Counted from the stretch's first letter, positions 1,118 to 63,034 are shown. The stretch: DNA of 64,000 nucleotides from Ramazzottius varieornatus (GCA_001949185.1 BDGG01000009.1:1105624-1169623); one strand, 5' to 3'. Notes: generated from the letters alone by a model not told the origin. Translations and numbers: made by a program.

Positions 1118-1892
1118 TTAATCCAGAACATGCATCCTTGGCAAAAGGAGGAGATATATTGCCTTGAGCACTGTGTAGCTGGAAGTTCGGCTTCCGGCAT
1201 TGTAGTTGCAGAGATCAGTGGAGCAACAATTGGTACACACCCATTCTTCTGGCTCGTTCACGTCGCAGGGAGCGTGCATCTCCAACGCACGCTTTTGTGT
1301 CAGGCAGGAATCTCTCTTGCTGCATCGCTTCGTGATTTGTAACTTCCCCACTTCCGCTAGGAAAAACCCACCGTGCATTCTTTTCGACAAGATTATTCCA
1401 GCAGTCTGTATAACTTACCTGCGTATCTGACCATGGTCAGACATGTATCGTATGTGATAGGACATTGCCGAACGCTTTCCGTTCCGTTGCATTCGCTGTT
1501 GTCGTGGGCGATATCACAGCTGAAACACTCAATGCCAGAGACTGCAAAAACAACCCTTTTCAGGTTCAAAAATATACGAATGAAATATGGGACGTCGGCA
1601 AATGATTTCGGCTAGATCGTTTCCCCAATTGGCCCTCGAACCCGACGAATCGCAATTTAAACACGCGCCATTTGAGAAAACGATCATCTCGAGCTCACTT
1701 TTCAAGTGGCGCACAATGTCAGTGTTATTGACAGATATCACGCGCCCCTTGACAAAGCAACCCCAGTGATTTCATTGCCGACGTCCCGTATTCACCTAGA
1801 TTGCTTGATATATTACCTTCTGGGATTTTCCAAAGTACCATGGTCAGCAGAAGGCAAAAAGGAAGAATTGAGCTATAGAAATGTTGTGGCAT
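1118..1892 (-). CDS. Ly6/uPAR (three-finger) family protein, probably GPI-anchored; 3 exons (1817-1892, 1419-1541, 1118-1356)
   Basis: Spliced translation: signal peptide MPQHFYSSILPFCLLLTMVLWKIPEVSG, then IECFSC...C...C...C...KRC...C...C...CTNCCSTDLCN and a hydrophobic tail. GT-AG introns are in phase. Confidence 0.85.
1588..1788. repeat. Family A palindromic element, 2 units (Ly6 intron 1)
   Basis: TGGGACGTCGGCAAA...TTGCCGACGTCCCG ends; AAGTGGCGCAC core. Confidence 0.85.
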
Positions 1893-2964
1893 TTCCTGAC
1901 AATGTCCATCAATATAGGGCGTTGACGATGATGCCAGAGTTTTAGGAAGTCCGCTTTGCCATTAACGCCACTGTCAACGCACTGATCCAGAAAGCAAATG
2001 AGGGATGTGTGTGGAGCTACATCCTATTGGATTTCAACAAGCAGGAAGGAAGTGTGTGTGTTCGCTTGAGGCGTGTTTGCTGAACTTGGCGGATAGTCCT
2101 CCTTGTTTAAAGTCGAGATGAGAGATTTGGTGGCTGCCATTTGCATGATTGTGTCGATCGACAATAACCAGTATCTGTCAAAATCACTAACAATCTTTGT
2201 GCATCTTGTTCTTAGAACGCTCGCTTTCACGAAGCTGTGCACTGTGGATGGAGGCGCTTTGCTGTATATGCTGAGAGTTCCCCGGCTATAGCGCGGAAGA
2301 CCCAGACAAACAAAGTCAACCTCAACCTTTCAGACCGAAGAATTCGCAACTTTGCAGATGATTGTTCCCTAAGATTGCACATTTCATAGTTGCTCTACCG
2401 GCCGGTCGTCAAGCATCAGTTCCGCGATCTGCCCACCAAGAAACCGGCTCGTTCTTAACTTAGGAACAAGTATTCGCTTGAATGAAAAATAAGTACCATT
2501 CCTCGTTTGTATCAAACAAACTCGGTTACAATGAGGCAGCTTTTTTTCCAGCTGAGAGACGAAAATCTTGTTGGGTCTTTGGGGTCGAAATGTATGTACA
2601 GTAGGATAGCACTGTAGACCTGCTGGCTGTTGGCAAAGGCTTTGTTATTAGGATGTGCATGGTGGCGCCACCGTCGAGCAGGATTGTGGCAGGTGCTCTG
2701 CGCGAGTTCCTGGATAGGTCGGAACTTGTCGCAGTTGCTTCCGTAATCTATCCTCGTTTCGCGAACAAGATGAAACATTAATCTAGGGAATTTACTTTCC
2801 ACGTGACTCTATCCTGTCGGGGAGGCTCATTGGGGCGTATCGCGAAAAACATAATATATCAAAATTCTGGGAGCCCGTGCCGGAGTTCCGCCAGAAGAAG
2901 ACAGCGCGTCCGACAGCCTGAATCACTCCTCCACAGAGTGTAATTTCAAAGTGCCATCTGTATT

Positions 2965-3089
2965 TGGGAGGTCGGCAAATGACTTGGACATGATCGCTTT
3001 CACAAGTCGCGCACACTTTCGACCAGCTTCAATGAGAACTTGCGCCATTTGAGTTGACGATCATGTTCAGTTCATTTACCGACGTCCCA
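2965..3089. repeat. Family A element, 1 unit, complete 125 bp
   Basis: TGGGAGGTCGGCAAATG...CATTTACCGACGTCCCA. Confidence 0.85.
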
Positions 3090-3827
3090 TTTCGTGGGAA
3101 TTCTAACGCCTTCTCGTTGCTGGTCGTTCCTACTGATTGTCTCTTTCAGTTTGCACTTCTTTCGTCGTTACGTCAGATATCCTGAAAAAATTTTCCAAAC
3201 TTTTCCAACTTTTCCACCAGCCAGATAGGAGACAAGATGGAAGCTGACTTTTTTGTACGGACTATCCCTCGGGCATGCATGTCGATGTAACATGGTAATA
3301 TAATTTTGCAGATGAGAGTCGGAAGCCATTAAGGTCCCTCGTCTGCAGCAAAGCGATGGGGAAAAACTCATCCAGCAAAAAGATTGCGTGAAGGAAAAGA
3401 GCCGTCGGATCAATGAACACAGCTGCACAATATGATAACTTTCGCTGTTTGTTCTCCATATCGATCTTAATATGGCCATGAATGGATTGGTTTCGGTAGA
3501 TGTATTCACGGTCAATTCGACGCGAGCTAGTTATGACATAAGATGGATGAGGCGCTTTTCTCTGCCGTGGTCGAGTGATTGTGTTACGAATCGATTTGAG
3601 CTGAAAGGCCTTAAAGGCCCACTGAGGCACCACCATTTTTGCTGCGGCTCCTCCCGAGACATACTTTGCAGGCAGTATACATCTGCCGCAAAGCCGCGCA
3701 TCTTTTCTGTCAGTCCTTCCATGACAAGTGCCCGCATTTATTGCCTGGTTTTTAATGAAGCTCAGCTAGTGAGATGCTCATTGAAGTAAAAGGGTCCAAA
3801 TAGCATCATTAGGGTCGGCATGTCGAA

Positions 3828-5773
3828 TTGTACTCAGTGGCAGCTTTAGCCTTGTGGAGCCATCCTCTGTTCGTGCCGGAAATGGATTCCGTTACCGCTC
3901 TTTCTACTAAAGGTAAGGGGTATTTAGCCGACAAACCTGAAAAACCTGACATTATTTTCCTTCATGATCTGTTTAACTTCCCTGTAGAGCCGTCGCATCA
4001 GCCGATAGAGTGTAACAAGCCGACCGTCATCTGCCTACCTTCGGACCCGGATAACGACGACTTTGGAATCGAACTGACCGGTGGATGTCATTCCTACATG
4101 GTAAGCTGAGTTATGAGGCCGCCAAACGAAACATCCAAGTTTTTTTGAAGTGGCGCATGCTTTCAGCCAATAACACCAACAACTTGCGCTACTTGGGAAA
4201 CCAGTCAAACTCGACAGTTTCGCTTTCACTAGTGGCGCACGTTCCCAGTCAATAACATGAAAAAACTGCGTCACTCGAGATAACAATGTTGTACATTGCG
4301 TTTGCTTCTGGCCTTCTGATATTGAAACCGAAAAGCGAAGTAATGTTTGACAAGGTTGCCTTGTAGGGGGAAGTTTGCGTCTGTAAAGTTTATACGGATT
4401 CCGTTAGCTATCGGGACGGAAGACTAAAGCGAGGCGATGTTCTCTTATCGGTAAGCTTGTTTCAACGAGTTTGTTAAGAATGGGTTGCACAACAGCACTT
4501 TGGCTGTAAGTGCCGGAGCTGAAATTGACAAGGAACCACTTTGGGATGACAAGCTCCGATGAATTTATTACAAGCACGAGATAAGACTTGCTTGTCGTCG
4601 AGCGGCATCCTAATGGCGTGCTATCTTCCGTTGATGCTCTAGGTCAATGGCAAATCGATGAAAAAATGTTCGCTCGAAGAAGCTCGAAGCGCCGTAGCCA
4701 ATTCCCCTCATACACTACAGTTGGTCGTCAGACGGGATCCCGACCCTTTGACTCTCTTTACAAGCATTGAAGGTGATAACTTTCGGTGAAATATTCCAGT
4801 GCAATTTTCTACGATATTTCTCTATAAGAGTATTGTTGTTCCCTGCTCTTGTGTTCATAATTACGTGGTTATGTTGCTGTATTCAGATGTCAAGTTACAT
4901 CACGCTCATTTCAAGATTTTTCATAGAGCCAAAAATTTTTATTACGGTGGAGCTGTGGAGGACCCATATCAACGAGCCTCTGGGGATTTCTTTAATGGAG
5001 CGAAAGTATGTTTACATCACAGTAATGCATGTCTTTATTAGCAATTATAGCTGTAAGCTTACATGGCTCTCACTCATAGACGTCTTTGGTAGGATCGTTT
5101 CATTTCCAGGGACGTCGGTGTCTTCGTCACCTGGATGGTATCATGAATTTCTGAGAGCCGGGAAGGCTAGCGTTGACCTTTTTTTCACGTGACGAGCGCT
5201 GAACGATGATATCCGGTTTTCCTGCAGAGACCTGGATCTCCAGCTGACAAGAGCCAACGCATAAGACAAGGTGATAAGCTCATCGATGTCAATGGAGTCT
5301 CCGTCAAAGGAATGGGCCAGACCCAAGTGGCTCAAATCCTCAGAGTGAGCTGAGTTCATCCGCTCCTCGTTACGAAAGATTAGACTCTTGATTTTCCCAT
5401 AGGAAGTGGAGAATTCCTGTGTGTTGGTCCTGGGAAGGATCCCCGCCCTGTATGCCCGTATACAGGACTGGATCCGCGAGTCTCATCAGCTCACGCCCAA
5501 GAAGGTCGCCGTCAGCCGTACTTCCTCGTGGACCTACTCGGACGCGAACTTATTGAAAGCTCGAAAACTGTAAGTTGCCCTCCGGCTTGGACCAAAAGAC
5601 CGCGAATCAGAATTGTCTTCGGTCGTAGTGGTCGAAAAGCGGAAGATTCGGCAGTTAGTCGTCGTCAGAGTAGACGCTTCTCCGCCTTCAACCTTCGCTT
5701 GCGCTCAAACTCCACGCAAATGGAAAGACTTGCCGTACATTCTGCACCTCCCTCGAATCGAAGCAGTAGCTAA
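3828..5773 (+). CDS. Multi-exon PDZ-domain protein (two PDZ domains); 5' end and final exon uncertain
   Basis: Exon translations FGIELTGG / GEVCVCKVYTDSVSYRDGRLKRGDVLLS and EPLGISL / PGSPADKSQRIRQGDKLIDVNGVSVKGMGQTQVAQILR. Stop is either at 5573 or, via a short intron, at 5773. Confidence 0.6.
4112..4300. repeat. Family A element, 2 units (PDZ gene intron)
   Basis: AAGTGGCGCAT-N25-TTGCGCTACTT plus a second unit. Confidence 0.8.
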
Positions 5774-5967: not shown

Positions 5968-8900
5968 ATGCTGCCCGGCATATTGCGAAAGGCCGCACTA
6001 ACAGCAGCGGCAGCCGGCGGCACCTTCCTCGGAGCCACTTCGTTAAAATTGTATGACTTGAAAAAGCATGCTTCCATTGCTTCCTGCTCGCAGAATAAGC
6101 CAGAAGAATATCTTGATGTTTTACCTACACGCGAAGAGCAGCTGAAAAGTCTGCAGCAGGAAGATGTGGAGTATGATGTGTTGGTCATTGGTGGAGGCGC
6201 CACCGGCACTGGTAAGTTCCTCTCGAGTGGCGCTCGCTGCCAGCCGATCACAATGGAGACATGCGCCACTTGAGATCTGCTGTGTTTCGTATCAACTCCT
6301 ATACTTGGTTGGGTCGCTCAACAGGTTATGATGATAGGTTTCTGTTTTCGTTGTCGCAGGTGTTGCGTTGGACGCGGTAACGAGAGGGCTGAAAACTGCC
6401 TTGGTCGAACGGGAGGACTTTGCTGGGCAGACTAGCAGTAAGAGCACGAAGCTTATCCATGGAGGTGTTCGTTATCTCCAGGCTGCCATCTTGGGCGTCG
6501 ACATCGAACAGTACAATATGGTAAGCCGCAATTTTGTGAGGAAAGCCGTTATCATCTTTCTAACTGGCACTCACGTGAATGCTCGTGAATTCGATTAGGT
6601 CAAGGAAGCACTTCGAGAACGGAGTAATTTTCTGTCCATCGCACCACACCTCACGAAAGCTTTGCCAATTCTGTTGCCGCTTTATGATTGGTGGAAGATT
6701 CCCTACATGTGGATAGGTAAGCTCTTTATAGAACGATTGGCGTGTGGAAGGGTCTGTTCAGGAAGGCCGGCAAACAAAACATCCAAGATCGTTTATCAAA
6801 GTGGCGCATCCTTTCGCCCAATAACAATGGAAAGCGTGCGCCACTTGACATGGCGACCTTGTACGCTCTGTTCGCTTAGCTCCCGTATCCTGTTACGAAC
6901 TGATTATGCCTTTATGGGTCCAGGTATCAAAATGTATGATCTTGTTTCTGGCGACACCATTTTGCGTAACAGCTATTACCTAAACACCGAACGATCCCTG
7001 GATGTTTTCCCTCAGCTGAATGAGACAGACCTGAAGGGCGGTATCGTCTATTTCGACGGTCAGCAGAACGATGCCAGGATGTGCGTTGCTTTGGCTCTCA
7101 CGGCGGCCAGAATGGGTGCCAATGTAGCCAACTACGTCGAGGTAACATCGCTGGTCAAGGAAATGGAAGGCACAGGACCCGCTCCGCCGAAGGAAGTCGT
7201 CAAAGGTGCTGTTGTCAAAGACACCTTGACGGGCAAAGAGTGGACCATCCGGGCCAAATGCGTTATCAACGCTACTGGGCCTTTCACCGACGCTGTCCGC
7301 AGAATGGATGATTCGACTGTCAGAGGAATCTGTCAACCCAGTGCAGGCGTTCATATCACCTTACCTGGGTACTTCACCCCTAAGAAACTGGGCTTGCTGA
7401 ATGCCGAAACTTCTGATGGCCGAGTGGTCTTTGTCCTGCCGGTAAGAAAAAAATGCTCTTTTTCTTGCTGATCAGTTTCGAGAATAATTTAATTTCCTGT
7501 GGTTTTGCCATAATCATTTATGTTAATTTAACATTACGAGCTTGATATCGTTATGGTTTTCTCTGTTGATTTTATTGGTTCTCAGGCTGAATATGTATGT
7601 GATGGTGTTTTGTTTTACTGATCAGTGGCAAGGTGTGACATTGGCAGGAACAACGGACAAGAAGTGCAAGGTCTCCACCAGTCCTGTTCCAAGCGAAGAG
7701 GACATTGAATTCATTCTTAACGAATGCCGCAAGCTGATCAAGTTAAAAATAACGAGGAACGATGTCTTGTCGGCCTGGTCCGGTATTCGTCCGCTCGTAC
7801 TGGATCCCAGCAAGAGTGATCGAGATACCAAAAAGATTGCCCGAAATCATATGTGAGGACAAAATGGTTTGCTCGCATTGATGGATAATGACGAAAGGAT
7901 ACGTTTGGGACCTGGGCAAATAAACTCGACCAGATCGTTTTCGCAAGTGGCGCACGCGTCCAGTGTTTTCAGCTATAGGCGTGCGCCACTTGGATAATGG
8001 ATCTGGTCAAGTTCGTTTGCCGGGTTGCCAGTCATGCTTTGACCGGACAATCTTCTGTTCCTTGCAGAATTGAAGTAAGTGACGGTAACCTCATCACTAT
8101 TGCGGGAGGGAAATGGACGACCTACCGCAGCATGGCGGAAGAGACGGTGGACGCAGCCATTAAGGTTGCCAAACTTCGTCCGCCGTGGCGCCACTCGCAG
8201 ACCATCGGATTCAAGCTGGAAGGAGCCCATGGTTCGTACCTTCTCCTTTGTTTCGTTTTTGTTCGTCTGATCCGTTCGTCGCGCTGTACATTCTACGACC
8301 ACCTGCCATCTTTCTCAACAGATTTCGAGCCCAATCTGGCCATCAGTTTGGAAAACAATTTCGGAGTGGACCGCGATGTGGCCAAGGTCAGTTGGTCAGA
8401 TGCCGTATTTGCACGCATTACTGGCTGCGTATCATGCTTTATACTCATCAAAATTTTGTAGACAAATGATCAGAGGAACCGTGAGCAACGGGGCTTCAAT
8501 TTGCAAAAACAATCAATATCATAATTTCAAGGCCAAACCAGTTTGGTTTTACAACGTAGTGTAAAATTGTTGAGGAGAAAAAGAGACTCTTTTTGCTGTT
8601 TTGTTGAAGTGTCTTATCATTTTGAAATGTCTGAAACTTGGATCGATCAGTTTTTTGCTTTACAGCATCTGGCTTGCCAGTACGGCGATAAAGCAATCGA
8701 CGTCCTGAAGCTAGCCGAGCCCACAGGCAAGACCTGGCCACTGCTGGGTACGCGACTGGTTGAACGTTACCCATACATCGAAGCCGAGATCCGCTACGCC
8801 ATATGGGAGTACGCCGTCAATGCCGTCGACGTCATCGCGCGTCGCACCCGACTAGCCTTTCAAGACGTCGACGCCGCCAAGGCCGCTCTGCCTCGAATCG

Positions 8901-9490
8901 TGGAAATGATGGGCGCCGAGCTGAAATGGGACGCTGCCGAGAAGACGCGCCAGACGACCATGACGCTGGACTTCCTCGACAAGCAGATGGGCTACGCCGC
9001 CGTCCGCTCACCCACTTCCGCCTCCTCCATGCAGAATACGGGTAACTATCTGAAAAAGTTCTTGGAAGCGGCTGGTGGTGCGGGGAAGAGCACCAATTTG
9101 GCAGTGGTCAGAAAGTCTCTACAGAGCTTGGAGATGGGCGATATGGTGGAGGACGAACTGGAGAAGATTGCCGAGAAGACCGGCTCGTGGCATGCCAACA
9201 AGGAAGTCAATGCGGTGGAGTTTTTGAACATGGTCAGGCATATAGTCAGAGAGAAGGAAATTATGGATGATATCCACTCGTATAAAGTGGCCATGACCAA
9301 GTCCAATACTCAGTACATGCTCGACCAAAACCTACCCAAGTCTCCTGCCACCGATCCTCCGAAGCCTGCCGTCACGGATATTTCGAAGCCTGGCGCGACG
9401 AATATTCCGAAACCTCCCGCCACGGACCTTCCGAAGCCTCCTGCCACGACTAGTGCCAAGCCGAAGCAAGACCCAAAGACTAAAATATGA
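5968..9490 (+). CDS. GPD2: Mitochondrial FAD-dependent glycerol-3-phosphate dehydrogenase (about 8 exons)
   Basis: YDVLVIGGGATG, DAVTRGLKTALVEREDF, TSSKSTKLIHGGVRYL, YFDGQQNDARM, SAWSGIRPLV, IAGGKWTTYRSMAEETVD, DVIARRTRLAF. Confidence 0.95.
6222..6275. repeat. Family A element, core only (GPD2 intron 1)
   Basis: GAGTGGCGCTC...ATGCGCCACTTG. Confidence 0.75.
6760..6855. repeat. Family A element, 1 unit (GPD2 intron)
   Basis: GGCAAACAAAAC...AAGTGGCGCAT-N26-GTGCGCCACTT. Confidence 0.8.
7906..8030. repeat. Family A element, 1 unit, complete 125 bp (GPD2 intron)
   Basis: About 50-bp near-perfect inverted arms around a 25-nt loop. Confidence 0.9.
9335..9466 (+). repeat. Coding 24-bp tandem repeat (about 5.5 copies; PKPPATD-like octapeptide) in the GPD2 C-terminus
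   Basis: PKSPATDP/PKPAVTDI/SKPGATNI/PKPPATDL/PKPPATTS/AKPK. Confidence 0.85.
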
Positions 9491-9689
9491 CGGTTACTGG
9501 CTGCCGATCGGTGCCAGCATTGCCGCTCTTCCTCACAACGATGCTCGGTACCACCGGTCCATAAAGACGACCATGATTGGAAGGAAAGCCTTGAAACTCC
9601 CTAACTAGAGCCGTCGTCTAGTCTTTCTTTTTCGAGCGAAGGTTGTCTTATCTTTTAACTCTTGCATGTATTTCTTTCCGGGATTATTT

Positions 9690-9790
9690 AGGACACCAGG
9701 CGGATTGTTTTCAAGGTGGCGCACAGTTTGAGCTGATAGCAAGGTGAAGGTGCGCCACTTGAGATATCGATAGCAATGCGTTCATTCATT
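9690..9790. repeat. Family A element, 1 unit (between the convergent GPD2 and nAChR stops)
   Basis: AGGTGGCGCAC...GTGCGCCACTTG. Confidence 0.75.
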
Positions 9791-9942
9791 TGACAATGGT
9801 CCGTCTGGTCATCTTTCACTTTTTATTTGTAGCTTTTGTTTTTGTTACTCGACAGTTTATTGTACACGTATACCGGAAAATAAAGCGATTGAAGGTGAGC
9901 TTCGAAAGCACTACGTTTGTGAAAGCTAGGAAGACCCGTGTA

Positions 9943-12900
9943 TTAGCCATTCTCATCTCGAAGGGGGTAGATAACGAGAAGGAACAAGGTCGTACAAAAT
10001 ATCAACAGGAAGAAGACACCAAAGCAAAAGCGATCGAATATTCGTCCGACTTCGATCCATTCAGCAAAAGTCTCTTCGACCATCTTATCCTCGTCAAACT
10101 TATTTAATAAACGCTTGATGCGACCGACCACATCGCCGTCCGGGGGAACGAGGGGTGCCGTCGAGAAAAGGGAGGTCGACATGTAAGATAAGTTGGGTGA
10201 TTGCATGGAATCACACGAGGTTTGTGCGTAGTTAGCGTTGTTTGAGAAACCAATAAGCCGTCGAAGCTCTTCCAAATGATGGCTCTGCTCGGCGTCCGCC
10301 GTCGGATCAACATGATTAAGTGTTGATGCACCATCTTTGACATTGTAATTGCGGTAGACTTTGGACGCGTCTACCATGTAATTTTTCTTGTGATGATTGT
10401 AACCGGGAAGCGTATGTGGTGGTCGATTCAGCAACTTCCCATCATCCGAGTACAATGGCCTGATGAAGGTTATGCGAGTCATGTAGCGAAACTACAAGAA
10501 CAATCATTTCACGGAATTTCAGTTATTGAACGCTTGATTCATCAATCATCATTCATCAAACTGGATACGGGAAGACCCCGAGACCATGGCGAGCCATATG
10601 GGAGAGTGGCAAAGAGATTTGGCCAGATTGTCATCTCAAGTGGCGCACGTTACACTGCACCTGAACAAGATCGTGCGCCACTTGAGAAACCCGTTCATTG
10701 TCTCAACAAGCTGCACATGTCCTCATTGTTAGTGGCTGATGGTGTGCGCCACTTGGAAAAAGGATCTTGCGCACTTCGTTTGCCGACCTCTCATATCGAG
10801 TGTACATGTGTTTTCATCAGGGCTATAAATGCAGTCGATAAATCTTTCAATTATTCATGGAGTTTAGTCTGGCAAATATAATCATAGGGAGATCTCAAGC
10901 TGTGCACGTACTGTTAGTTTCCGGAGCCAGTTCGGGACTGGATTCCTTTTTGTCCCACGGTAATGGAAATTTAGGATAGCTACGGTGGACCCGACAGACA
11001 AGGAAGCGATGAATTCCGTTGATAGAATATAAAGACCCAATCTACAATGGACATGCACTCAGTCAACAATCAGGATCATTTCGTATGTAAGAAAAGACGA
11101 ACGAGGAATATGCAAATTGGCATACAGTGGGACTGCATCACTTGTCTCCGGCATTGTCTCGCCAATCATCAGCATGAAGACAGAGAAGGCCAACAGGACC
11201 GTCAGACCGAGGTTGATCTTCTCGCCGGCATCACAGGGCAGCCAGAACACCACCATGGTCAGCATGGACAACATGACACAGGGCGCTATGATATTGTAGC
11301 TGTGGTACGCGGTCTTCCGCCGAATGTGGAAGTTCACCGTTACATCCGGGAACGGTTCTACACAAAATCCGTGCCACATATCAACACAGGGCTCAAACAC
11401 AGAAAAACGTCGCAAAGCATATTCACCCTTTACCTTCGCAACATGCGTACCGATTAACGTTGCGCACCATCCTGCAAGACACTACCAATAAGGGCCGTTA
11501 TGCCGACCAGGTTTTGAAAGTAACTAGCGGCTACTTACGTTGTGTTAATGATAACCCATTCTCCTATCGACAAAATTAATGCATGATTATTAATAAATTA
11601 ATTATTGATTAGTATTACTTAATCCAGCAACTGCTTAGTCCCAGTCGAAACAAATGAGCCATACTGTGGCTGAACCACGCGGTTTCGTCACTTACCGCTT
11701 TCCATGTAGTCCGTCATATCCACGTTGTCTTTCCTTTTGACCACATCGAGCTGCAGGCACATATAGTGTTACTGTGAAGCCTAGCGGGATGCTGAATTAG
11801 CCGCGAACTATTTTGAAACCGAAACTCATACGCACCTGATATCCATCGTAGATCCAAGAGCCCAGTTTCAGCAAACATTTTTGGTCCTGCGGAGGCAACG
11901 CCCTTTTGTTTGACCTTTCGGTACATGACCGTATGCAGAAAGATACGAAACTGGTACGCATAGGAGCGGCAAAGAGCTGTAGAGAACTTACGTCGAAGGG
12001 AAAGTAAGTTGTGTCTATCTTGCAAGTGCTTCGCATCTTTGTGGGAGGCGACCAGAAAACGTTACCGGTATGTTGCAGAACCTGCCCAAACAGTTCGAGC
12101 ATTATAACGAATCGTTAATTACTTCCAGATCCACTTTGGTACGACCCTTAGCGTACCACATTGACCGGCATGAGGTTCTTGTTATAATCGTCCGCACTAT
12201 AAAGAAAAATCCATAAAGATGACAACAAACGTGACATCAACCAGTGAGGTGCATCACAAATAATTGATCCGTGGAGATCAAAGAGCAGACTAGCCTTGTT
12301 TACATTTCCACTTTCGGACAAAGCCGACGGGCCTTACTTGTTGTACAGAACAATGTCGGGAAGCCAGATCTTCGTAGACGGGACGATGATCATTTCTATC
12401 CCGCCGAACTTCGCAGGGTCCCAGACCAAAACTTCATCCGTCCACTCCTACATACACTCAACACTTATGGATGCTTATGGATGATAGCCTGACTTCTTAC
12501 TTTATGTGGAACGTCGGCAAATAATTTACCCAAATCTTACCTCAAGTAGCGCACATTTTTTATATTAATATTGTTCGGCGTCAGCGTGCGCCACTTGATA
12601 AAAACAACCAGACTCGACAAGACGGTTTTTCCAAGCAGCGCACGTTTTCATTGGTATAGGCCGAGAGTGTGCGCCACTTGTGAAAACGATTAGGTGAATT
12701 TGTCTGCCAACGTCTCTGTCAAAAGAAGGGAAAGAGTCGTACCTGCTCGAGCCAAACATTCACCGTCAGCACTTGGTTTCTTTCATCCACCGAGGCGATT
12801 TGGGTGAGCACGAAGCCGATCTTGACGGTCATGGCCGTGGACGCGTTAACAACAGGCCTTGCGGCTTTCTCGTAGTTAACCATCAAATACTGTAGCAGCC

Positions 12901-14013: not shown

Positions 14014-14228
14014 TGAGCAGTGGGCAGAGTAGATCAGTAAGGCGCGTTCAGATGACATCATATGAAGCGGGGCATTAAATTAGAGAATATCCGTAGACGA
14101 CCAATGAAAGCACAAAGTGTTTAAGTTTTGCGATCTTGATTGGCCAATTAAAGGAAATCTTTATTCCGTTGCCGCTCCATATTTTTTAAACTAGCCCCGC
14201 CTTACTGATCTACTCTGCCCGTTGCTCA
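14014..14228. mobile_element. MITE-like element with about 31-bp terminal inverted repeats
   Basis: TGAGCAGTGGGCAGAGTAGATCAGTAAGGCG at 14014-14044 and its reverse complement (2 mismatches) at 14198-14228. The interior is non-coding. Confidence 0.7.
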
Positions 14229-48178: not shown

Positions 48179-48750
48179 GTGCAATTCACTCCACAGCACC
48201 TTTCAGATATTTTTTACGGTTCAGTTTCAATTTTCCACTTTTTCCGTCTGGCCCAAACTTTTTAGGGGCCCGAACTTTCTTTTCGTGCGTGTACCGATTT
48301 CAGAAATTACCAAGCAGGAGCAGATTAAGTCGCCCCGCTGATCACAAAGAGTTTCCGGCGAATGTGCCCCATAGGTAGCGCCTTGAGCGCCTGTACGGCC
48401 CAATTGGAGGCGCACTTCGTAAGTCTTCGTCGTAGGCGCTATGAAGTTACTGTCAGGTCCCTATCGATATCACAGTCAAACAAGGGAGCTTCATTTATCT
48501 TTCTCGACCTACACCTGAAGGATGACATATGGCTTATCTACACGGCGAACCAGCGAATGCGTATAGAAGAGCTCGAAAGGAACGCAGATTCCGCGACAAA
48601 GTGACCATAAGAAAACTGGAGCCAGCTTATGGGCGAAGCTTCTGGTTCCGAAATATGGCCTCCGGACAAACGCTCTTGTTTAATTTGCCCCACCGTCAGA
48701 GGAGCCATCGACGAATACGTTATGATCCCGATGGGACTTCATAGTACCGC

Positions 48751-50572: not shown

Positions 50573-50939
50573 CTTGTCGGGATATCGACAACTCCCACTG
50601 CACCCTCGTCACAAAACTGAAGCGTCAAGCATCCATTGTGCATCAAAGAAGGAAAACCCACTCACATTGCGCAGCAGCCGAGAATTTTGTTGTACAGAAA
50701 TACTTTGTTGTCAAATTTAATCGAACGAGATTTTCCGCCCTAAAGCAAGGTCACTACTACCTTGCCATACAACTTATACAACGTACGACCTTCAAGTGGA
50801 GTTACCCCCCCCCCGGGCGAGACCCCAAACTGCTGAGGGCGGGCGTCGAGGGAGTTGTTCGATCAGCTGTGCGATCGGTTATGTTCGAGTTGTTGCAGAC
50901 CGCTTGCTCCGTTTACTCGGTCCTGAAATTATTTGCGCC

Positions 50940-53201: not shown

Positions 53202-55978
53202 TGCTTTTAGTTCCTATTATGATGATGATGAACACCCGGAGCTGTATTGATCTTTGCGAGTTCCTGTTTGCGTAACACCGTAGTTCCGCTAGCACCCCTA
53301 GTTAGATTTTTGGAAATTCACCTCTGAATTTTTATCGTTACCTTTGCCATATTACCGAAGTGGTTGATTTTCTGTTGAATTTATTCAGAAGCAAGTTTCT
53401 TCTGTGTCGACGTGAACAGAAATGGGAATTGCCGCCATAATACAGGTATTTACATGTGAACGTTTTCTTGATTTCTTTGCTTCCTGAGTCCTTTCTTGAA
53501 AAGGCTGATGAGGTGATTTCGGTAATCGCTTCCCTTCAGTCCGCCCGTATTATCCATTTATCTGCTTACTCATAATTAGAACATTTTCAGATTACTATCG
53601 CGATCCGCATGGAGTAGCTGCCATGGCAAGACCCACAGGAAGCGAAAGAAAGAGCAAACTGGCAGTGGACGGTTCGTCCGAAGGGACGTCACGGAACACT
53701 GACCGAACAACATATCTCGTGCATACCTTGCACACCCAATAGGAAGACACTGCGGTAATAGCTTCACTTTCGAGAAGCTGCTCCGAAGAGCAGCTTCTCC
53801 GGCTGAAGACATCGTTGGCAATCTTTAGTCGATGGTCGAGCCAGAAGCTGCGAGATTGATTGAAGAACTTGACGATGGATCCGAAACAGTGGTAAGTCAC
53901 TTATTGTTACAAGCCCAAACTGATCACATTCGCACGCCGCGTTCCCACGGTTGTTTTTGAATACTGTCACGGTGATTCAGAATGTGGTATCTTTCGTCGA
54001 GCAGGGAAGACTATTTCCGCCAGGAGTCCTCGGAGCGATCCAGAAGCGTTCTTGAATGGGGAAGGGGAAAGTTGAACGTACGAGACTGCGCTTTGCTTGT
54101 CAGGGTGTTGAACTGAACTCCGAGGTGGCCGAACCGCCCCACAGTATCTCAGATGGCTTCATCCGCAGAACTTTCGGCCTCACTTAATCCGCGGCTTTTC
54201 AACATCTTTGCTGGGTTTACCATTCTTAGTCCGGGCAAGTCGTGAATTGTATGAGCAGGACTCAGCTGGTGGTGCTTTCCGTGTCCGTCGCATTTCTGCT
54301 AGTTTTTCTTGTAGTTTCTGACATATCAAGTTACGGTACAAGTTCCTGCAAATGGTTTCCCAGGTACTGATTTTGTTTTCTGCTTTCTTCTGATTTTATT
54401 GAACACTTTGAAGAGGCTCGTGACCGCGCAGAGGATTTGGTCGGACTTTGATACTTCCGCAAGGCTATCCTCGAGTTTCCGAGAAGCCGTGTGGCTGTCT
54501 TGTTTCTCAAAAGTCCCGGGCCGTGAATATTTGTGACGGGAAGAGGTCCGAGCTGCTGACTAGTCAAACCACCCAACGCCAAGTGATTCCAGCCGAATTC
54601 TCACTCGTGCCCTGATTCGCATCACAGACTGCGGTTTGCCACGCTGAACTCGTACGTAAGTACCGTCTTTTAGACGGTTATTCCGCTTCTTTGAATTCCT
54701 CGGTACTGCGTGGTTTTCAATCCTAGCAGTATGCCAATGATTATTTTGTTGACAGGACTACCTGGGTCTTCCTGAAACGCTTTCGGTACAATTATTCACT
54801 TCTGTCACCACAAGTTCCGTGTACCAACTCTAGATGCTTTTTCAGGGACCGTGATACGTTGGTGACCGCTTCTCCAACCGCACTTTCGTGTGGCCGGCGA
54901 CGGCCATACCGGAAGTCAGAAAATGATGTCGAGATTCGGGAATCGGGACCTGGTGGACGTTGAAAGGCTCTGCTTACCAGCGGAAGGAGCCGAACGATGG
55001 ACTACACTATGAGATACTGCCTCCAAGTGTCGCACAGGTACCGTAACTGGCGAGTGTGAATAGCCGGCGAGTGGTGATATTACTCAAATCTAGTATCAAA
55101 ACCCGGCTCACTAACTTCGCCGACATTGTCTTCAGTGAGCTCTGTACAGGGCGGGAGGACAGACAGTCCGACAGCATGTTATCAAAACTGCCTAATTATA
55201 AATTCAAAAGAACCGGTTCTTTCTTTGAGTTTGTGAGGTTCCGATGTCGGACATACGTGTTCGACTTTGTACTGTGGGCCGTGAGCACTGTATGGACCAG
55301 GGTACATATGCGGGAAAAATTTCCGAAATGATCGGAACTTCAAAATAACTTGTGCTGAATTTGCAGACTACATCTAGGAAGCCGCGGAACCCATAACAAG
55401 AACCACGGACCATCCAGCCGACTTACAAGAATGTCAAATTAAGCGAACTGTATGTCTTCGTACGATGCTTGATTCGTCCAAGTATCGAGCGTGATACAGA
55501 ATGCCGAGATGGAAGAGTACATTGCAACTTTACGGTTGCGTTGGGCGCCACTTCATTTATGGACACGCAAGTTACACACGAGCAAAACGCGTAAGCTTCA
55601 AATTAAAGCTAATGTAGGCGTTATTGTTTAATTCAGTGAATAGATCCGATCGTGCTTGTCTTTAAGATAACCCACTGTATGTGATTATATTCTTGACTAG
55701 AGAATACATTTCTCTGATCGGCGTGATCGCCGGACAAGAAAGCGAAATTACATTGTAGGGTTGAGCTGTTTTGTTGCAGAGACCTCCTCACATCAATTCA
55801 AGTTGACACCGTCAAGCTCTTTAGTCTTGCTGGCAGGTACTATCGTTCTCAAGTTGGCGCCTGATGTGATATTTATCGAAGCTGATGGATTTTTTTCCGT
55901 GTCAGCTGGAACAGAATACCACATTTTTCTCTCGGATTAACATTGTAGAGTTTCGCAAAAAGTAAGTTGATTGTAATC

Positions 55979-56199
55979 TGGGTGCGTGGCAAGGAACTCG
56001 ACCAGATCTTTTCCTTGAGTGGCGCACTTTGTTACTCATTTTGGCTCATCTTAACGTCCTCACATGTATCGCTAGAAGCGTGCGCCACTTGGGAATGCAT
56101 TCGTACTCGACGGGATCGCTGTTCCAAGTGGCGCAAATCACTAACAACGTGCGCCACTTGGAGAAACGATCTGGTCGAGTTTTTTTTGCACAGCTCTCG
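55979..56199. repeat. Family A element, 2 units with aberrant loops (about 50 nt and 12 nt)
   Basis: GGCAAGGAACTCGACCAGATC...GATCTGGTCGAGTTTTTTTTGC. Confidence 0.85.
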
Positions 56200-57678
56200 C
56201 GTTTTATTATGATGTATTCGCTTAGCGTTTCTTCTTGATATGTGTTCTCTGAGGTCTCCGCTGGACTGGGCAGGTTCGACAGCCATCGTTCCGCTTGGTG
56301 CTCGTATTAAATGACGACTTTCCAGTCTAGCTGACAGTCTCGCCTGCCTCGCGTAGTTCGGACGTGTTTTTCACCGTGAAATCTTGTTTGTTATCAGTCT
56401 GATCTCTCTTGATCACCTGTGCTAATCAAAAAGCCAAAGCGGAAGTCAATCGCCTATCAAAGCTGTTTTATTCGCTATTGTCGAAACCATACAACGACAA
56501 TCCCTTCATCTGTCTTTTCTTTGTTCTTTCCAGATTGCCAAAGGATGTACCGAACTTGAGTCGTTGAAATATTGAGGAGTATTTTGGTGGAAGGTCTCCG
56601 AGGGTAAGACTGTAATAGGCAAGAGTCTCGAGCTGCACTTGGGGTTTTTGGATGGTTGAGTTCTTCCACGAGGTGATCATCTTCGCTGCCGGTAAGACTA
56701 ACCAGTGGTTTCGCGTTAGGTCGCCCACGTCTGGAGGAAAAAGTGCCATGTGAATATCGTTATGTTTTGCCGCCCTGTCATCAATTGGCTCTTAGTCACG
56801 CTTCCACGTTCCACGTAGCTTCCATACTTCGCCTTATCATAATTCACTTTTGTGTGAAGCTCGACCATCTCAGTCGTAAGCTCGAAGCAAAAAAGCGCCG
56901 TATGAATTTAAAGAAGGTGAAGCGAAAGCCAAGCGATAGTACATGTATCAAGTCGATCACTTTGTAAAGCTTCCGTCGTTTTGTTGCAGGTACCGAACAG
57001 AATATTGGCTCACTCTGTGAGCAGCATACCATGGCATGCGGACTGAAGGACGAGTCAACTAGAAGACAATTTCCAAAGAATCGTGCCTTCTTCAGCATCA
57101 AATAGCGCGTATGGCTTTTTATGATGGAATCTTCACCGGTAAGACTTGACTCTCTGCCATGGCGTTGTCCTACTTGCAAAACTCTTCTCAAACCGATCAA
57201 ACGTAACTATCTCTCTCAAAATTGTCGTTGACAAGGGTGAGAAAACTCTTCGCCTGTTGCACGAAATTACGACCATTTAAAAGGCTACCATTTTGTTTTT
57301 GTTCCACATTATTCGCTACACTGATACTGTGTTTATCTCAACTGCCGGTTACGCGTCCGGTATAACTATTCTGATCTGCTTAATTTCCGCTGCAACAACC
57401 ACCTCCGTTTTCACTCGCAAAACACCGGTGAAGCCTCTTCCTTGTCGAACGCTGCGGAATAATCCGCAAAACTTCCCAAGGAGTATTTCTCAGAGGTCGG
57501 AAACTAAATGCGAACAGTTTGCACACACCTGTGTACTCGCGCACTACAGCAAAAATGTGATTGCGCGTATGCGGGTTTGTGACAGACAAGGATGCTTTGT
57601 TACTCGCCTCGCGCTTGTCATTTGAATGAAATTTCAAGTGTGGGATCTTACTTATTTTGGTTTTTGATAGGTTGAACA

Positions 57679-60600
57679 ATGAGCCATTTTCGCAAATATT
57701 ATTCCCCTTCTACTCTCAATTCCTCCAACGCTTCTTCCACGTCGGCCAGTACGCCATCTACCGTCATCCAGGTGGGTCCTACGACCACTGCTGAAAGTTC
57801 CTCGGAGAATGTGCAGGTTTCAACGGACCCAAATCCACTTCCGTCTACCCACCTGTCCAGCACAGTTTCAGCCTTTCGCGGACAGAGCACGAACCGTGGC
57901 GCTTTGCCCACGTCGAATTTCCTAATCAATCGCCACAAGCTGTTACGGAAGACTGAAGAAGGTAAGGTGATGCGTGAGGGCGGTACTCTGAGTGGATCGC
58001 GCTCGCAGCTGACCGGCAGCTCGTCAAATCTAGCCCATAAGCCAAAAGAATTTGAGAATTATGGCGCTAATGGAAAGTCATTCGTCGAAGATGAAGATAG
58101 ACACGCTTCAACGGACACATCGCGGTATGATGATAGTGCTGGGAACATCACCGAGACGGACTTTTCCGAGCGGTCAGCAGTATCGAGAATCCCTGTTGGA
58201 AACGTGGAATACGGTGGAAACGAGAGGCCGATCGAACATGTTACTTCGCAAAATTTCGAAACTGAGTAAGAACTGGAAACTAAGTTGTAATTCAGAAACT
58301 CTATTCCTGAAACAAAAATAGACAAACGAACAAATTTCTGACTGGGAAGTCCGCAAATGGTGTTACGCAGATCGTTTTTCCAGTGGCGCACGCTTTCGGC
58401 TAATAACAATACAAACGTGCGCCACCTCAGATTGTCGAGTTTGATTGTTTTCCAGGTGGCGCACGTTTTTAGCCTTATTGGCCGTAAGAGTGCGCCACTT
58501 GAGATAAGAACTTGGGTGGACTCATTTGCCGACGTCTTAAATGTTCAATTATTTAGAATAAAAATCAAAATTCTGATAGTTGAAATAATTAAACCATAAG
58601 CCGAATATTTCTTTGGAAATGATGGAAAACCGATTGTGGTTAGAAAGTTGCGTATTATTCTGTAGTAGTGAGGCCCCGCGCGCAGTGTCGTCCGTTCGGT
58701 GGTCGCCGAGCTCGAGCAGTCGCCCACAAGTGCCGCCGAAACCAGATATTTCGAGCAATGAGTTGGAGAGAAAGATGGAGGAGATTGCGGCCAAGTCGAA
58801 ACAAAGTCGAGGGATCTTACGTGTACCGTCCTTGCGTGGGACTCTAACTCGCTCGAGAACGCCCTCACGCGGACCTTCCGAAGAGAGACCGGCAAAGAAA
58901 AAAGAAGAATACTTACACGAAAGTGTTACGTATACAAAAACCAAAGCGCCAGCAGAAGTACCGGTCAGTAGTGCAGCACCTTCTTCTGGCCGAGCTAATT
59001 TCTTCCGCGGTCGATCAGGTAACACAGTCACTTCTTCGTCCTCCTCGCGAGCAGAAGTCTCTTCGCCTCAGTTGCTCAATACTACCACCGACCAAGTTGG
59101 CTCAGCTGTAGAGATTGGTGGTACGTCGAGGAGGATCTCCCCGTCACCTCAACGCACGTCCATCATCCCAGCTCCCATACAGACGGGCACGGTGCAAACC
59201 GCGAACTTATCCTTGAGGGAAACTGATCGACCTGTCGATGTGGAGACTATCGTTCAGATCGCTCCCGTTTATAGCCGGCTCAGCGACGTCCGATCTGCCC
59301 CAAAGCAAACGACGCGAATCCAGGTATTTCCTGTGTTAACAATCCATTCCTACATTTGGAAGCTCGGAAAGCAAATTCCTCCACATCGTTCTCTCAAGTG
59401 GCGCATGCTTCTATCCATTAGCAACGTGCGCCACTGAGGAAAACAGCAAAACTCGACAAAATGTTTTTTCAAGTGGCGCACCCATCTGGCCAGCAACAGT
59501 GCAAACGTGCGTCAGCTGGGAAAACTATCAAAGTCGACCCGATCGTGCTCCCAAGTGGCGCAATCGTTCGACCAATATCACTGAAAAGGTGTGCCACTTG
59601 GAATTAACGATTTGGTCGATTTTGTCCCTTTGGTGTACATCGGAGTATCTGCCTTGACCTTACTATTTTCATTTCACAGCAAATGATGGAGTCCTCTCGG
59701 CCCGCTGTGCCCTCACCAACGCCTAGCGGGTTCATCCAGCCGCAAATCCGTCCCACTCCGCCACGGAAACCGGTCAGAACAGATGTGAACGAAACTCTGA
59801 TAGAAGTTCTTCCGCAAGGGAAAGCGAGACGTCCAGCACCGCCGGTACCGGCTGTCAACCACCGAGCGGCAACAGCTGGTCGTTCTGAGCAGCACGTAAC
59901 GACTATCCGCACCTCCTCTCCGTCACCGACACGTGCTGGTCATCTGTCGACCGTCGCGAACCTCAGCCGCAATACCAGCCCAACGCATGGCGTAACGGTA
60001 CCTGTCAACAATCATAACAATGTAGGACACGATGCCGCAAGGCCCATTCAGCGCATCGAAAGTGCCCCCAAAAGTATTAACGACTCATATGCGGGCCAAA
60101 TGACGTTTGATGATGAGTTCGACTCGTTGATGTCTTCATCACACGTCGATTATGAACATTCGTCGGCTGACGAAGACGATGACTTGGTCAAGAGGTCTCT
60201 CATGAAAGCTTCGGGGAATCGACGAGGAAACATCGAAAATATCGAGGAAGAGAACATCACTACGACCTATGTGGACAACGCACCAACTGTGTACAGGACC
60301 GAGTTCGCCACCCATTCGCAGTCTCACTATGACAAACTACCTCAAAGACATACTCGGACAGGTAACTACAGGTGGCACAGAACACGGAAGGTCGGCGAAA
60401 AACGCTTTTTGCAACCTGCATACATCGTGCTGTACAATTTCCACGGTGTGCGAGTATGCAGGCTCCATAAAATACCTATTCCGCAACCTGCATACATGGA
60501 TCCGTATGGTTTAAATGGTATGGGAGTATGCAGGTTCTTACAGAGGGATAAATGGGTTCTGACAAGCTTTCGTGCAGTTAGCTTCGACTCATGATCGGTT

Positions 60601-61056
60601 TTCTCTGTAGTTGTGCAACGGAAGCCATCGTTTCTTTCCTCGGCTGACGATAGCGACTCATCTCGCGGACAAGGCAATCTAGCTGGGTCGAATGTGCGGT
60701 CAAGTGTGACCACTACACGAGTCTCCCGCCGGGAATCGGACGTCAACCAGGCCGACGCGCAATTACCGCGCGACGATTCGGCGGGTAGGCGTAAGTACGA
60801 CGAACGCCGCCAACTCCTCCGCAGCTTTGAAGAAAATCTCCAACGGAAACGCCATCAGTCGGCTAAAGACGATGATCGCTTTACGCAATCAAATCAAAAC
60901 GGACCGCCGCGGAATACCCAACAACCCCATCACATCTACCGACAAACTGGGTAAGCCGACTTAGAAAATATCAAACGAAATATGATCCCCACAAAATAAA
61001 CGATAGGTGTCGATCAGACGAAGCTTGCTATCACCGTATGTTTGAACAGGTATTAA
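57679..61056 (+). CDS. Uncharacterised Ser/Thr/Pro/Arg-rich, probably disordered protein (4 large exons plus a tiny last exon)
   Basis: Long open exons at about 57679-58265, 58665-59323, 59680-60361 and 60611-60950 bounded by GT-AG; PxxP motifs; no recognised domain. Confidence 0.65.
58343..58539. repeat. Family A element, 2 units (intron of the disordered-protein gene)
   Basis: TGGGAAGTCCGCAAATG...CATTTGCCGACGTCTTA. Confidence 0.85.
59357..59630. repeat. Family A element, 3 units (intron of the disordered-protein gene)
   Basis: Three AAGTGGCGCA hairpins. Confidence 0.85.
60383..60574. repeat. Variant ('family B') element: family-A-like ends with two AACCTGCATAC-N30-GTATGCAGGYT hairpins
   Basis: CACGGAAGGTCGGCGAAAAAC...GTTCTGACAAGCTTTCGTG; cores start at 60413 and 60485. 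Confidence 0.75.
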
Positions 61057-61372
61057 GTTTTAGATAGAGTATTAATTTACTAAAGCCCGAGCTTCCGCTT
61101 GACAAATACGGTGTGCAGTAAGGGTAAACGTCGCTTAACGATCGTTCATTCAATTCATCATTATGGCACTAGGAGCAGTCATTGCGGCCACTTGGAAAGA
61201 GGTACGTGATGGCCTCAGGAACGAAAATATTCTGTACAATAGAAGAAAACAATCACCATGTGTCAAAGAGAGACCGTGAAAGATTTATACACTGGAGAAC
61301 TTAATATTGCTTTATGTACAGCCACAGATCAAAAATCGCTCGTTTGTTCAATACTTGTCACGGTCGCGATGG

Positions 61373-63034
61373 TTATTCCGTGTAGACGTAACGTGGTAAT
61401 GTCTGGCACAGTCTTTCTGTTAGGTCATGCTGCAAAATAAGAACAAAAATACGGTCGTTAATTTTACCAACCAACGAACTCTTCGGACGTCTGTCGGAAC
61501 TTTTGTGGGTGTTGTAACTAATTGCGGTTCTCACCAGGGGTTCCAGCTCCTTCTTGGAGACGAGGTTGAATTCCGTCACAAAGTAATAATAGTGCTTGTA
61601 ACATAAATTAACATGTGGCACCTGCGATAATGAGCAAAGAAGATGGGTCATCTGTGTGGCCAGTGCGGTAGATGATAATGGTAATGAGGATGTGAGTGGG
61701 GTTCTCCAACTTCACTTGGTACAACTTACCGCACTCAAGTCCGTCAAGGTATCGAAGTGATGAATATAAATATGCACAAACACCCGATACATCCGTGAAG
61801 CGATCTTCTTACACGTCGCAAGAAAGTTCGACGGAAAAGGCACATCTACAAGAGATCAATACCAAAATTAAGCCACAGATTAGTAAGAAAAGCTGGGAGC
61901 TCGGCAAAACCTCCAATACTGTATTTCCAAGTGGCGCACATGTCCAGTGTTGTTGGCTAGAGACATGCGCCGCTTGTGAACAACGATCTCGGCGAATTTG
62001 ATTGTTTTCAAAAGCGGCGCATCTTTCTACTTTTAGTGGCTGGGAGCGTGCGCCACTTGATAAACCGATCTGGTGGACTTAGTTTGCAGCGGTCGTAATA
62101 AAAAAAATTTATTGGAAAAAAATCACAAATAATAATAATCATCAATCTAAGAAATACTTTCAAAATAATCTGGAATTGGTGCGCGTTGTTTTTTACGTAC
62201 CGACGAAGACAGGGAAGACTTTGATATCATTGATGGTGGTGTCGACCCAGTCAAGTAGCAGTGTCAGGTATTCGCGAGCCGGCATTCTAGTGGGTTTTTT
62301 GTACTCTCGCCCATCCGACCAGAAATATTCATACCTGTATGATATTATGCAAAAATACCAAATGAAGATATGCGGAGCAAATTGGACCGAGTCAACAGTT
62401 AGAGAGTTCACGGTTCGAGCAAGTGTTTACTTTTGGCCAGCTGACATTGTTGGACATGTTGACGGAGTGCAGTAATCAGTTACCTGAAACAGGCAAAACA
62501 TGTCCGGATTTAAACTAACATTGCCGTACGGACAGACGCACGACGTTGTCCAGCCGTTTTTGTTTGCTTTTCCACATAAGTAACGATGTAAATTCCCAGA
62601 CTTACCGTGCCGTATATCAGGTTGATGCGGTTGAAGAAATCCACAACTACAAAACAAGAACACAAATTCCAGATTCGGGTCGTGAAAAAAAGGAGCTGCG
62701 ATAGCTCTTACTGTAGACAGCAATCCAGTCTTCCAAACTTTCCCCTTCCGGAAGTCTTACTGTCCGCTTCAAGTCGACTTCCGTGTCGAAAGAGGCCAGC
62801 GCTCGTTTATGCAGAGAGTACTTGAGGGTTCCTGGAGTGAAGTGTTTCTTCGGTCTGAACGTCTGCAAAGAAAAAATGCCCACTTCTGTCTTTTCCAGTT
62901 GGTTCAGCACTGCAGGTTGACTGTTTCAAGGAGATTCTTTCTCGTAAAAGGGATCGTACCTTTTTGCGGCTGAAAAAGTCCATAAACTGGGCCATAGATC
63001 TGGCAGGCGGGAAGCCGGCGCTTTTGGGAGCCAT
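61373..63034 (-). CDS. MOB3: MOB kinase activator 3
   Basis: [86 protein letters not shown]. Confidence 0.93.
61894..62097. repeat. Family A element, 2 units (MOB3 intron)
   Basis: TGGGAGCTCGGCAAAA left end; two hairpins. Confidence 0.85.

Follow-up and report, generated by a model that had tools for sequence, protein, structure and literature searches.

The window described here, a 64,000-nucleotide stretch of the genome of the tardigrade Ramazzottius varieornatus (GCA_001949185.1, BDGG01000009.1:1105624-1169623), carries between positions 1589 and 62094 a total of 28 loci of one repeated palindrome, set among multi-exon genes and lying in part within their introns. The family to which these loci belong is mostly intronic and very abundant, with an inner hairpin unit that is present one to five times in tandem, and it very probably represents an old, apparently immobile MITE (miniature inverted-repeat transposable element) family of the tardigrade genome, the multimers of which were amplified as units. 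The loci were found with a profile that was built from one copy and iterated with nhmmer on the window, and they comprise six monomers, 16 dimers, three trimers and three hairpin-only or weak fragments. An original prediction, made from the sequence of the window, had counted about 28 copies in 64 kb, and the profile search that it proposed recovers this number. The loci are as follows, letter strings giving segment orientations and RNA contigs being named where they cover the locus:

1589-1787, dimer, first hairpin degenerate; flanks are ATAT and GTAT-like 4-mers
2965-3089, monomer of 125 bp; ATTT on both sides
4116-4306, dimer with 35-nt linker, orientation F-f-F
6220-6275, hairpin-only fragment in a transcribed stretch resembling an untranslated region (UTR) (RNA contigs)
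6762-6884, monomer in a + strand intron (about 6720-7015) of a GPD2-like gene (RNA contigs)
7906-8030, best-kept monomer, in the + strand intron 7853-8067 (215 nt, GT..AG; RNA contigs)
9702-9772, hairpin-only fragment in a transcribed 3' UTR-like stretch (RNA contigs)
10600-10790, dimer in the - strand intron 10492-10911 (420 nt; RNA contigs)
12508-12715, dimer
15446-15690, trimer, outer ends truncated, R-r-R-r-R
18170-18445, trimer, both ends present, R-r-R-r-R
20426-20616, dimer, left end lost, second loop flipped (F-f-R)
21558-21756, dimer, boxes decayed
22957-23154, dimer, F-f-F, directly 3' of an ATG14-like exon
25424-25589, monomer, right arm disrupted
27657-27831, dimer, truncated ends, linker flipped (F-r-F)
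29610-29817, dimer, F-f-F; AGTT on both sides
30521-30714, dimer, R-r-R
32456-32621, dimer with 20-nt linker, nearly the whole of an inferred - strand intron between ankyrin and DHHC exons
34991-35109, monomer, right box partly deleted
38168-38364, dimer, R-r-R
39490-39683, dimer, second hairpin decayed
41688-41849, monomer and partial second unit
43141-43215, weak fragment (E about 0.001)
55988-56196, dimer, insertion in loop 1 and deletion in loop 2
58344-58536, dimer with 26-nt linker, F-r-R
59358-59625, trimer
61895-62094, dimer, R-r-R

The monomer follows the grammar A-B-D-C-L-C'-D'-B'-A', in which A stands for the end (TGGGAGCTCGGCAAAC or its ACGT and AGGT variants), B for AAACTCGACAA, D for GATCGTTTTCCC and C for the box (AAGTGGCGCAC), while L, the 25-nt loop, forms a small hairpin of its own with CCAATAACA as its asymmetric centre. 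The two halves of the element mirror each other, without a microsatellite, and the copies at 2965-3089 and 7906-8030 match their earlier description as 125-bp nested-palindrome monomers. In multimers, the unit B-D-C-L-C'-D' is repeated between constant ends; the hairpin measures 47 nt and the linker D'-B-D 35 nt, which gives an 82-bp period, while a short form of the linker, about 25 nt long and missing one D, gives a period of 72 bp. These periods, together with a loop of 25 nt in 63 of 80 hairpins, agree with the predicted hairpin-linker modules of roughly 80 bp. The linker segment B is flanked by inverted D arms just as L is flanked by inverted C arms, so that a multimer amounts to a series of inverted arms whose spacers are 25 nt and 11 nt long by turns. 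The abundance of these motifs far exceeds chance, as the window contains 70 instances of AAGTGGCGCAC with at most one mismatch, where 1 was expected and every shuffle gave fewer, and 19 of the linker motif (0.6 expected).

The genome searched comprises 55,842,812 bases in 200 contigs, of which 264 kb, namely the window and an unbiased 200-kb block (C1:1.0-1.2 Mb), were covered by scripted analyses and the remainder by pattern listings. Hairpins with both 11-mers perfect occur 752 times and relaxed hairpins of the form GGCGC-N27-31-GCGCC 5697 times (163 in the control), while adjacent pairs were found 242 times with the long and 68 times with the short linker (0 and 1 in the control), in addition to three triples and a longest array of five hairpin units with an 82-bp period at C1:1396-1759, 1.4 kb from the contig end. 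Since about half of the modules in the 264 kb examined keep the relaxed pattern, the 5697 relaxed hairpins scale to about 11,000 modules, in about 9,000-12,000 loci that are about one fifth multimeric and add up to about 1.3-1.5 Mb. The elements, 125-300 bp in size and without an open reading frame (ORF) of their own, are spread at about 10,000 loci across all large contigs. The 200-kb block holds 30 of them (22 monomers and 8 dimers), and the window is atypical: relative to the genome mean, hairpins are about 4 times and intact long-linker dimers about 14 times as dense. Contig 1 has seven intact dimers in 0-6.8 Mb and 27 in the 2.3 Mb that follow (6.8-9.1 Mb), and such regional clustering of multimers suggests either arm-like chromosome domains or separate amplification bursts. 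Within the window, a stretch of 12.8 kb (43216-55987) has no copy despite its multi-exon genes, which encode MFS transporters and a pyridoxal phosphate (PLP)-dependent decarboxylase; at the density of the window itself such a gap is unlikely (Poisson P under 0.01).

The full copies carry GGGAGSTCGGCAAAC and its complement at their two ends, and perfect 16-nt ends occur 153 times genome-wide and never in the control. In 100 perfect ends, an A stands three bases outside TGGGAG in 69 cases, with mostly A or T at the two intervening positions; on one and the same side, AAAT and ATTT occur with about equal frequency, while the mirror position on the opposite side is a T in 24 of 41 ends. Both flanks thus read A-N-N-T, and the element proper is better read as GGGAG...CTCCC than with the ends originally assigned to it. 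Among 41 end pairs, the flanking 4-mers match exactly as direct repeats in four cases, of which three are informative (ATCT, AGTT and GTCT), vs none as reverse complements, and the middle dinucleotide matches directly in eight pairs vs two in reverse complement (shuffle mean 3.7, P=0.018). Insertion was therefore probably accompanied by a 4-bp A-N-N-T target-site duplication, for which the flanks of these old copies give moderate support, although the original prediction had seen no consistent duplication. The flank comparison does not support TA, TWA, TTAA or 8-bp duplications, and a duplication placed three bases outside TGGGAG lost strength as pairs were added (z=3.0 with 20 pairs, z=2.5 with more) and is better explained by A-N-N-T. 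A Tc1/mariner (Stowaway-like) assignment was rejected, as 49 of 100 ends have AA or TT, and six have TA, as the dinucleotide adjoining TGGGAG, and so was a piggyBac-type MITE, as the flanking 4-mers are AAAT, ATTT, AATT or AGTT rather than TTAA and the ends are GGG...CCC rather than CCC...GGG.

The terminal inverted repeats, the lack of coding capacity and the lack of a partner among the sequences read suggest that the family behaves as a non-autonomous DNA transposon. The 20 longest ORFs of the window contain no transposase domain, in line with the absence of a transposase ORF noted before, and of the 153 perfect ends 100 were read inward without encountering a longer, same-ended element that encodes a transposase, the search for which had been proposed with the prediction; about 95 of them continue into the usual MITE interior, in which the box stands where it should. 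A single one of the 100, at C2:150157-150213, is followed immediately by unrelated sequence; it may be a copy that was truncated, or may belong to another, longer element as its end. Two matching ends of a rare variant, spanning 2.6 kb on C5, proved to belong to separate elements and not to an autonomous partner. The family is called old because the identity of its arms to the consensus is low (about 0.65-0.74) and no copy has two perfect 16-nt ends, and its structure would fit cut-and-paste mobility by a transposase that is probably extinct.

In the proposed mechanism, each copy would have been close to a perfect palindrome at insertion, with the ends described above and, inside them, two arm segments, a box of 11-12 bp (CAAGTGGCGCAC) and the 25-nt loop, a small hairpin with a 9-nt asymmetric centre. 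Insertion would have taken place at A-W-W-T sites, with these 4 bp probably duplicated. Tandem duplication of the inner unit, which comprises arm segments, box, loop and box, would have occurred in some source elements, with a period of 82 bp or, in the form with the shorter linker, of 72 bp, and dimers, trimers and rarer longer arrays would then have been amplified as units, so that monomers, dimers and trimers would be subfamilies rather than growth stages of single loci. The loops and linker cores, both of which lie between inverted arms, would each have been inverted in roughly one multimer in ten, and copies would persist where the compact genome tolerates them, namely in introns, UTRs and intergenic DNA.

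The box CAAGTGGCGCAC decays about 2-2.7 times more slowly than the arms. This was measured on 45 monomers detected by their arms alone (0 in a reversed-sequence control), because finding copies by their boxes would bias box identity. Identity to the consensus is 0.87 and 0.90 for the two boxes, 0.64-0.74 for the arm segments and 0.66 for the loop. As subfamilies differ in their arms, the complementarity of the two arms within each copy was used as a consensus-free measure; it amounts to 0.79 for the boxes vs 0.61 for D, 0.61 for B and 0.49 for A, that is a within-copy mismatch of 0.21 vs 0.39-0.51, from which the ratio given above follows. Neutral decay, uniform at all positions, had been named, together with a full-length match to a catalogued MITE or satellite family, as the observation that would speak against the original prediction, and decay was found not to be uniform. 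About half of the copies that carry a clear subfamily-diagnostic variant (columns 16 and 25) have it in both arms, a rate about equal to the survival of consensus pairs, and this symmetry argues that copies were near-perfect palindromes when inserted and that the within-copy measure mostly records decay after insertion. Double changes that keep a pair are virtually absent from the boxes (0.004), and box pairing equals the product of the conservation of both sides. Without compensatory changes, the constraint would lie on the sequence of each box and not on pairing, which points to sequence-specific recognition, presumably by a protein, rather than RNA pairing.

The genome also has a sister family, referred to as family B, of which the window contains two loci:

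57526-57577, family B hairpin, decayed
60383-60574, family B dimer in an intron-like stretch, with ends GGAAGGTCGGCGAAA and boxes AACCTGCATAC / GTATGCAGGTT

The dimer has 30-nt loops, a 72-bp period and ends similar to those of the main family. Genome-wide, the loops of family B measure 29-31 nt, and perfect 9-mer box pairs occur 320 times vs 0 in the control. Its loops are near random (0.573 vs 0.537 when shuffled) with the boxes intact, a contrast between box and loop that is stronger than in the main family. As the two families share ends and differ in their boxes, one terminal cassette carries at least two box types.

It is possible, if tentative, that selection retains the thousands of box pairs because a sequence-specific host protein, such as an architectural zinc-finger protein, binds them in DNA, so that the MITE would have served only for delivery. 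The slower decay of the boxes, seen within copies, free of a consensus and in copies ascertained by their arms, is what such selection would leave, as are the near absence of compensatory doubles, the lower net indel rate of the loop (0.0096 per nt vs 0.0171 in the arms) and the retention by family B of its own boxes around near-random loops. CTCF is one candidate, since 8 of 9 positions agree between the box and AGGTGGCGC, the strong 3' part of the consensus for fly CTCF (PMC1904468), and CTCF has been reconstructed for the panarthropod ancestor (PMC5094011). Positions 1-2 of the CTCF core are CC, positions 6-7 AG and positions 10-12 GGC (PMC1904468); compared with this fly consensus, the box has GGC and the following GC, while AG is replaced by AA, so that the single mismatch affects a G that is strongly conserved, and the box lacks the upstream CC. 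CTCF as the putative reader of the box is hence a lead only. The sample behind the decay measurements is small, and constraint on about 20,000 boxes would be a large load for a 56-Mb genome. Furthermore, the box is also conserved between subfamilies, which a mobility requirement would explain as well.

Such a requirement is the core of another reading held with similar tentativeness, in which the box is an internal binding site of the transposase or of an accessory protein, so that source elements were selected for mobility and dead copies decay neutrally. Subfamilies with quite different arms keep the terminal inverted repeat and the box, among them a younger subfamily of four near-identical copies (C1:5292966, C1:5932981, C1:6644743 and C2:695881), in which the arm differs (CTATCATGACCAGGTCGGTCTACT) while end and box are the same as in the main family. 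That family B shares the ends and has another box would also be expected of exchangeable functional modules. However, the symmetric diagnostic variants imply that within-copy mismatch should measure decay after insertion, and this is still slower in the box.

The original prediction had allowed for a domesticated cis-code acting through pre-mRNA structure or a DNA-binding protein. Of this, the pairing of pre-mRNA is argued against by the lack of compensatory change and sequence-specific recognition is favoured, whereas domestication itself is neither supported nor refuted. The full proposal, that inverted box pairs form a host cis-regulatory or architectural code which comprises about 10,000 sites and two or more box types on one terminal cassette, is rather doubtful. 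If it were true, boxes would have been retained by selection for a sequence-specific reader, with CTCF as one candidate, in a genome that otherwise sheds non-coding DNA; the slow decay of the box predicts a sequence-specific reader of thousands of intronic sites.

Turning to the multimers, the orientations of all segments agree with one another in 17 of 25 multimers when called by script and in 30 of 47 when read by eye from the genome listing, where 25% would be expected, and short-linker dimers follow the same trend. Because the monomer is symmetric except for L, independent duplication at each locus would unlink the orientations of linker B and loop. Loops within an element are also no more similar to each other than loops of different elements (identity 0.603 vs 0.592, permutation P=0.21), and the linkage of orientations combined with this lack of similarity indicates that the duplications are older than the divergence of the copies. 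The evidence thus says that dimers and trimers formed in source elements and spread as units instead of growing in place, and the regional clustering of multimers fits separate amplification histories. Discordant multimers include some with a single inverted loop or linker core (20426-20616, 27657-27831 and 58344-58536). Short spacers between inverted repeats are known to invert.

It is correspondingly improbable that each locus is an expandable array which, like a minisatellite, gains and loses modules of about 80 bp by slippage or unequal exchange. Module number does vary from one to five between constant ends, palindromic units are prone to slippage, and such hotspots were proposed by the authors who described the bivalve element DTC84 (PMC3879986), but the dissimilarity of modules within an element, the orientations linked across loci and the regional clustering of multimers together fit the amplification of pre-formed multimers. 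The view of the original prediction, that this is an undescribed, expandable, non-autonomous family, therefore stands in part: the family is undescribed in the literature searched, modular and, judging from its terminal inverted repeats, probable target-site duplication, about 10,000 dispersed copies and lack of coding capacity, non-autonomous, whereas growth in place is argued against by the orientation linkage and by the lack of excess similarity among the modules of an element.

Intron residence was observed directly at three loci by comparing RNA contigs from four runs with 6200-12100. The contigs have clean GT..AG joints at 7852/8068 and 10491/10912, and at 6719/7016 the stretch is replaced. 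The element in each of the two introns with clean joints is separated from the splice sites by 37-121 nt and therefore does not supply them, and introner elements were rejected on this ground. The dimer at 32456-32621 leaves over only about 11 nt and 12 nt of its intron, the splice sites of which were read from sequence only. Two of the RNA runs, labelled as the same organism, deviate by about 2-4% from the reference in UTR and intron sequence (8664-10756), so that a diverged strain or sibling species is present in public data. Contigs of these diverged runs cover the element parts 9702-9772 and 10600-10756, hence the insertions appear to be older than the split.

A function at the RNA level, in which the hairpin folds the insert out of the pre-mRNA, brings splice sites together or feeds small-RNA or editing pathways, is nevertheless unlikely. 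The intron 7853-8067 folds at -93.8 kcal/mol vs -63.6 kcal/mol for shuffles (z=-7.0), with the element as one long hairpin, and element-bearing introns are longer (215-420 nt) than element-free introns nearby (67-132 nt). A weak hint comes from loop orientation, which follows the gene strand at 13 of 18 loci in the window and the C1 block and opposes it at five (P=0.10, not significant), the strand having been inferred crudely from flanking open frames. On the other hand, arm pairing is no better than independent decay predicts, the box is without compensatory changes, the dimer-bearing intron folds only marginally better than shuffles (z=-2.0), and a scan of the window against Rfam at the gathering threshold gave no match. 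The proposed check for A-to-I editing revealed no A-to-G difference in RNA contigs of the same strain, a weak negative since assembled contigs mask partial editing.

Several points weigh against the interpretation of the family as an old MITE whose multimers spread as units. The target-site signal is modest (P about 0.02 from 41 old pairs) and no superfamily can be assigned; mobility would follow from structure alone, and an autonomous partner was not found among the ends read. About one third of the multimers are discordant, which calls for a second founding event at least, or for frequent inversions, and orientation calls on decayed loops carry some error. The decay analysis draws on 45-59 copies from 264 kb, and as the box is also kept between subfamilies with differing arms, part of its conservation may reflect a mobility requirement.

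Other features of the window are unrelated to the family. An inverted repeat at 14014-14228, with 57-nt arms that are 101 nt apart and 79% complementary, probably represents one more small palindromic element, and a further inverted repeat with a TTCGCGAA core lies at 51260-51376 (32-nt arms, 88% complementary, 53-nt spacer). The ATG14-like exon is 60% identical to a Hypsibius exemplaris protein.

At 1.3-1.5 Mb, or about 2.5% of the 55.8-Mb genome, the family may be a large part of the counted transposon sequence of this tardigrade, for which a share of transposable elements of 4.3% (PMC7943196) and a repeat share of 18-21%, mostly unclassified (PMC5531438), have been published. Naming it would improve the annotation of introns and repeats in a model extremotolerant animal, and the spread of its multimers as units would be a clean example of tandem repeats that were born inside a transposon and then dispersed.

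The literature search found no description of the family, a full-text search for the box sequence returned unrelated primers only, and a metagenome scan for perfect hairpins gave no match. The kind of element is already known, however, namely as tandem-repeat-containing MITEs. The original prediction had set MITEs, as usually having a fixed interior, against the modular REP/BIME arrays, a contrast that does not hold, since MITEs with tandem repeats are well described (PMC3879986, PMC7492417, PMC4079207). Among these are DTC84 of Donax trunculus and the pearl/CvA-type elements of bivalves (PMC3879986), which, like the present family, are high-copy and non-autonomous, contain a palindrome in each core repeat, and have constant flanks with short inverted repeats as a cassette for a variable number of up to five tandem cores. 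They are asymmetric, with a microsatellite at one end and cores about 160 bp long, and their putative target is AA, whereas the tardigrade family is a nested palindrome with a hairpin unit of 72-82 bp and A-W-W-T as a target with a probable 4-bp duplication; of the DTC84/pearl-type features, variable core number between constant flanks is present, while the microsatellite and the asymmetric flanks are absent.

Helentron-derived HINEs with central repeats, such as Cg_HINE of Crassostrea gigas and DINE-1 of Drosophila (PMC7492417), likewise form dispersed short satellite-like arrays in a mobile cassette, often in non-coding parts of genes, and related cassettes carry unrelated repeats, as do the main family and family B here. 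HINEs differ in having subterminal inverted repeats, an inner complementary repeat, a microsatellite and a 3' palindrome, substructures that are absent from the tardigrade family, and in inserting between T's without duplication. That the family is an HUH or rolling-circle element (Helentron/HINE-like, or a eukaryotic analogue of REP/BIME) rather than a cut-and-paste MITE is highly improbable: the hairpin-linker-hairpin modularity, the T/A-rich flanks and the Helentron derivation of the known animal carriers of central tandem repeats (PMC7492417) would fit, but the element is fully symmetric, its inverted repeats are terminal and not subterminal, microsatellite and asymmetric 3' palindrome are absent, a direct 4-bp flank repeat is favoured over none, and no HUH gene was seen, although no search aimed at HUH genes was made.

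The foldback-type transposon Tetris of Drosophila virilis (PMC4079207) shares long inverted arms, internal tandem repeats and non-autonomous copies that fold back. Its arms measure hundreds of bp and it seeds satellite, while the arrays of the tardigrade family consist of 1-5 units, and the sequence read revealed no long array of satellite. REP/BIME arrays are prokaryotic and intergenic, have units of about 35 bp and are tied to RAYT transposases. Their hairpin-linker-hairpin look and variable unit number resemble the present family in form only, as the latter is of animal origin and has terminal inverted repeats and a probable target-site duplication. With regard to the boxes, CTCF sites borne by short interspersed elements (SINEs) occur in mammals. 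In plants, MITEs have amplified E2F and other transcription-factor motifs (PMC5950925). Such transposon-borne sites resemble the tardigrade boxes in that a short motif, which decays more slowly than its carrier, is placed at thousands of positions by a small transposon, but they have a protein-binding motif, whereas here the site is putative and forms an inverted pair at a fixed spacing of 25 nt. What sets the tardigrade family apart from the known tandem-repeat MITEs is the nested palindrome that extends throughout the element, the hairpin as the repeated unit and, probably, the 4-bp A-W-W-T target.

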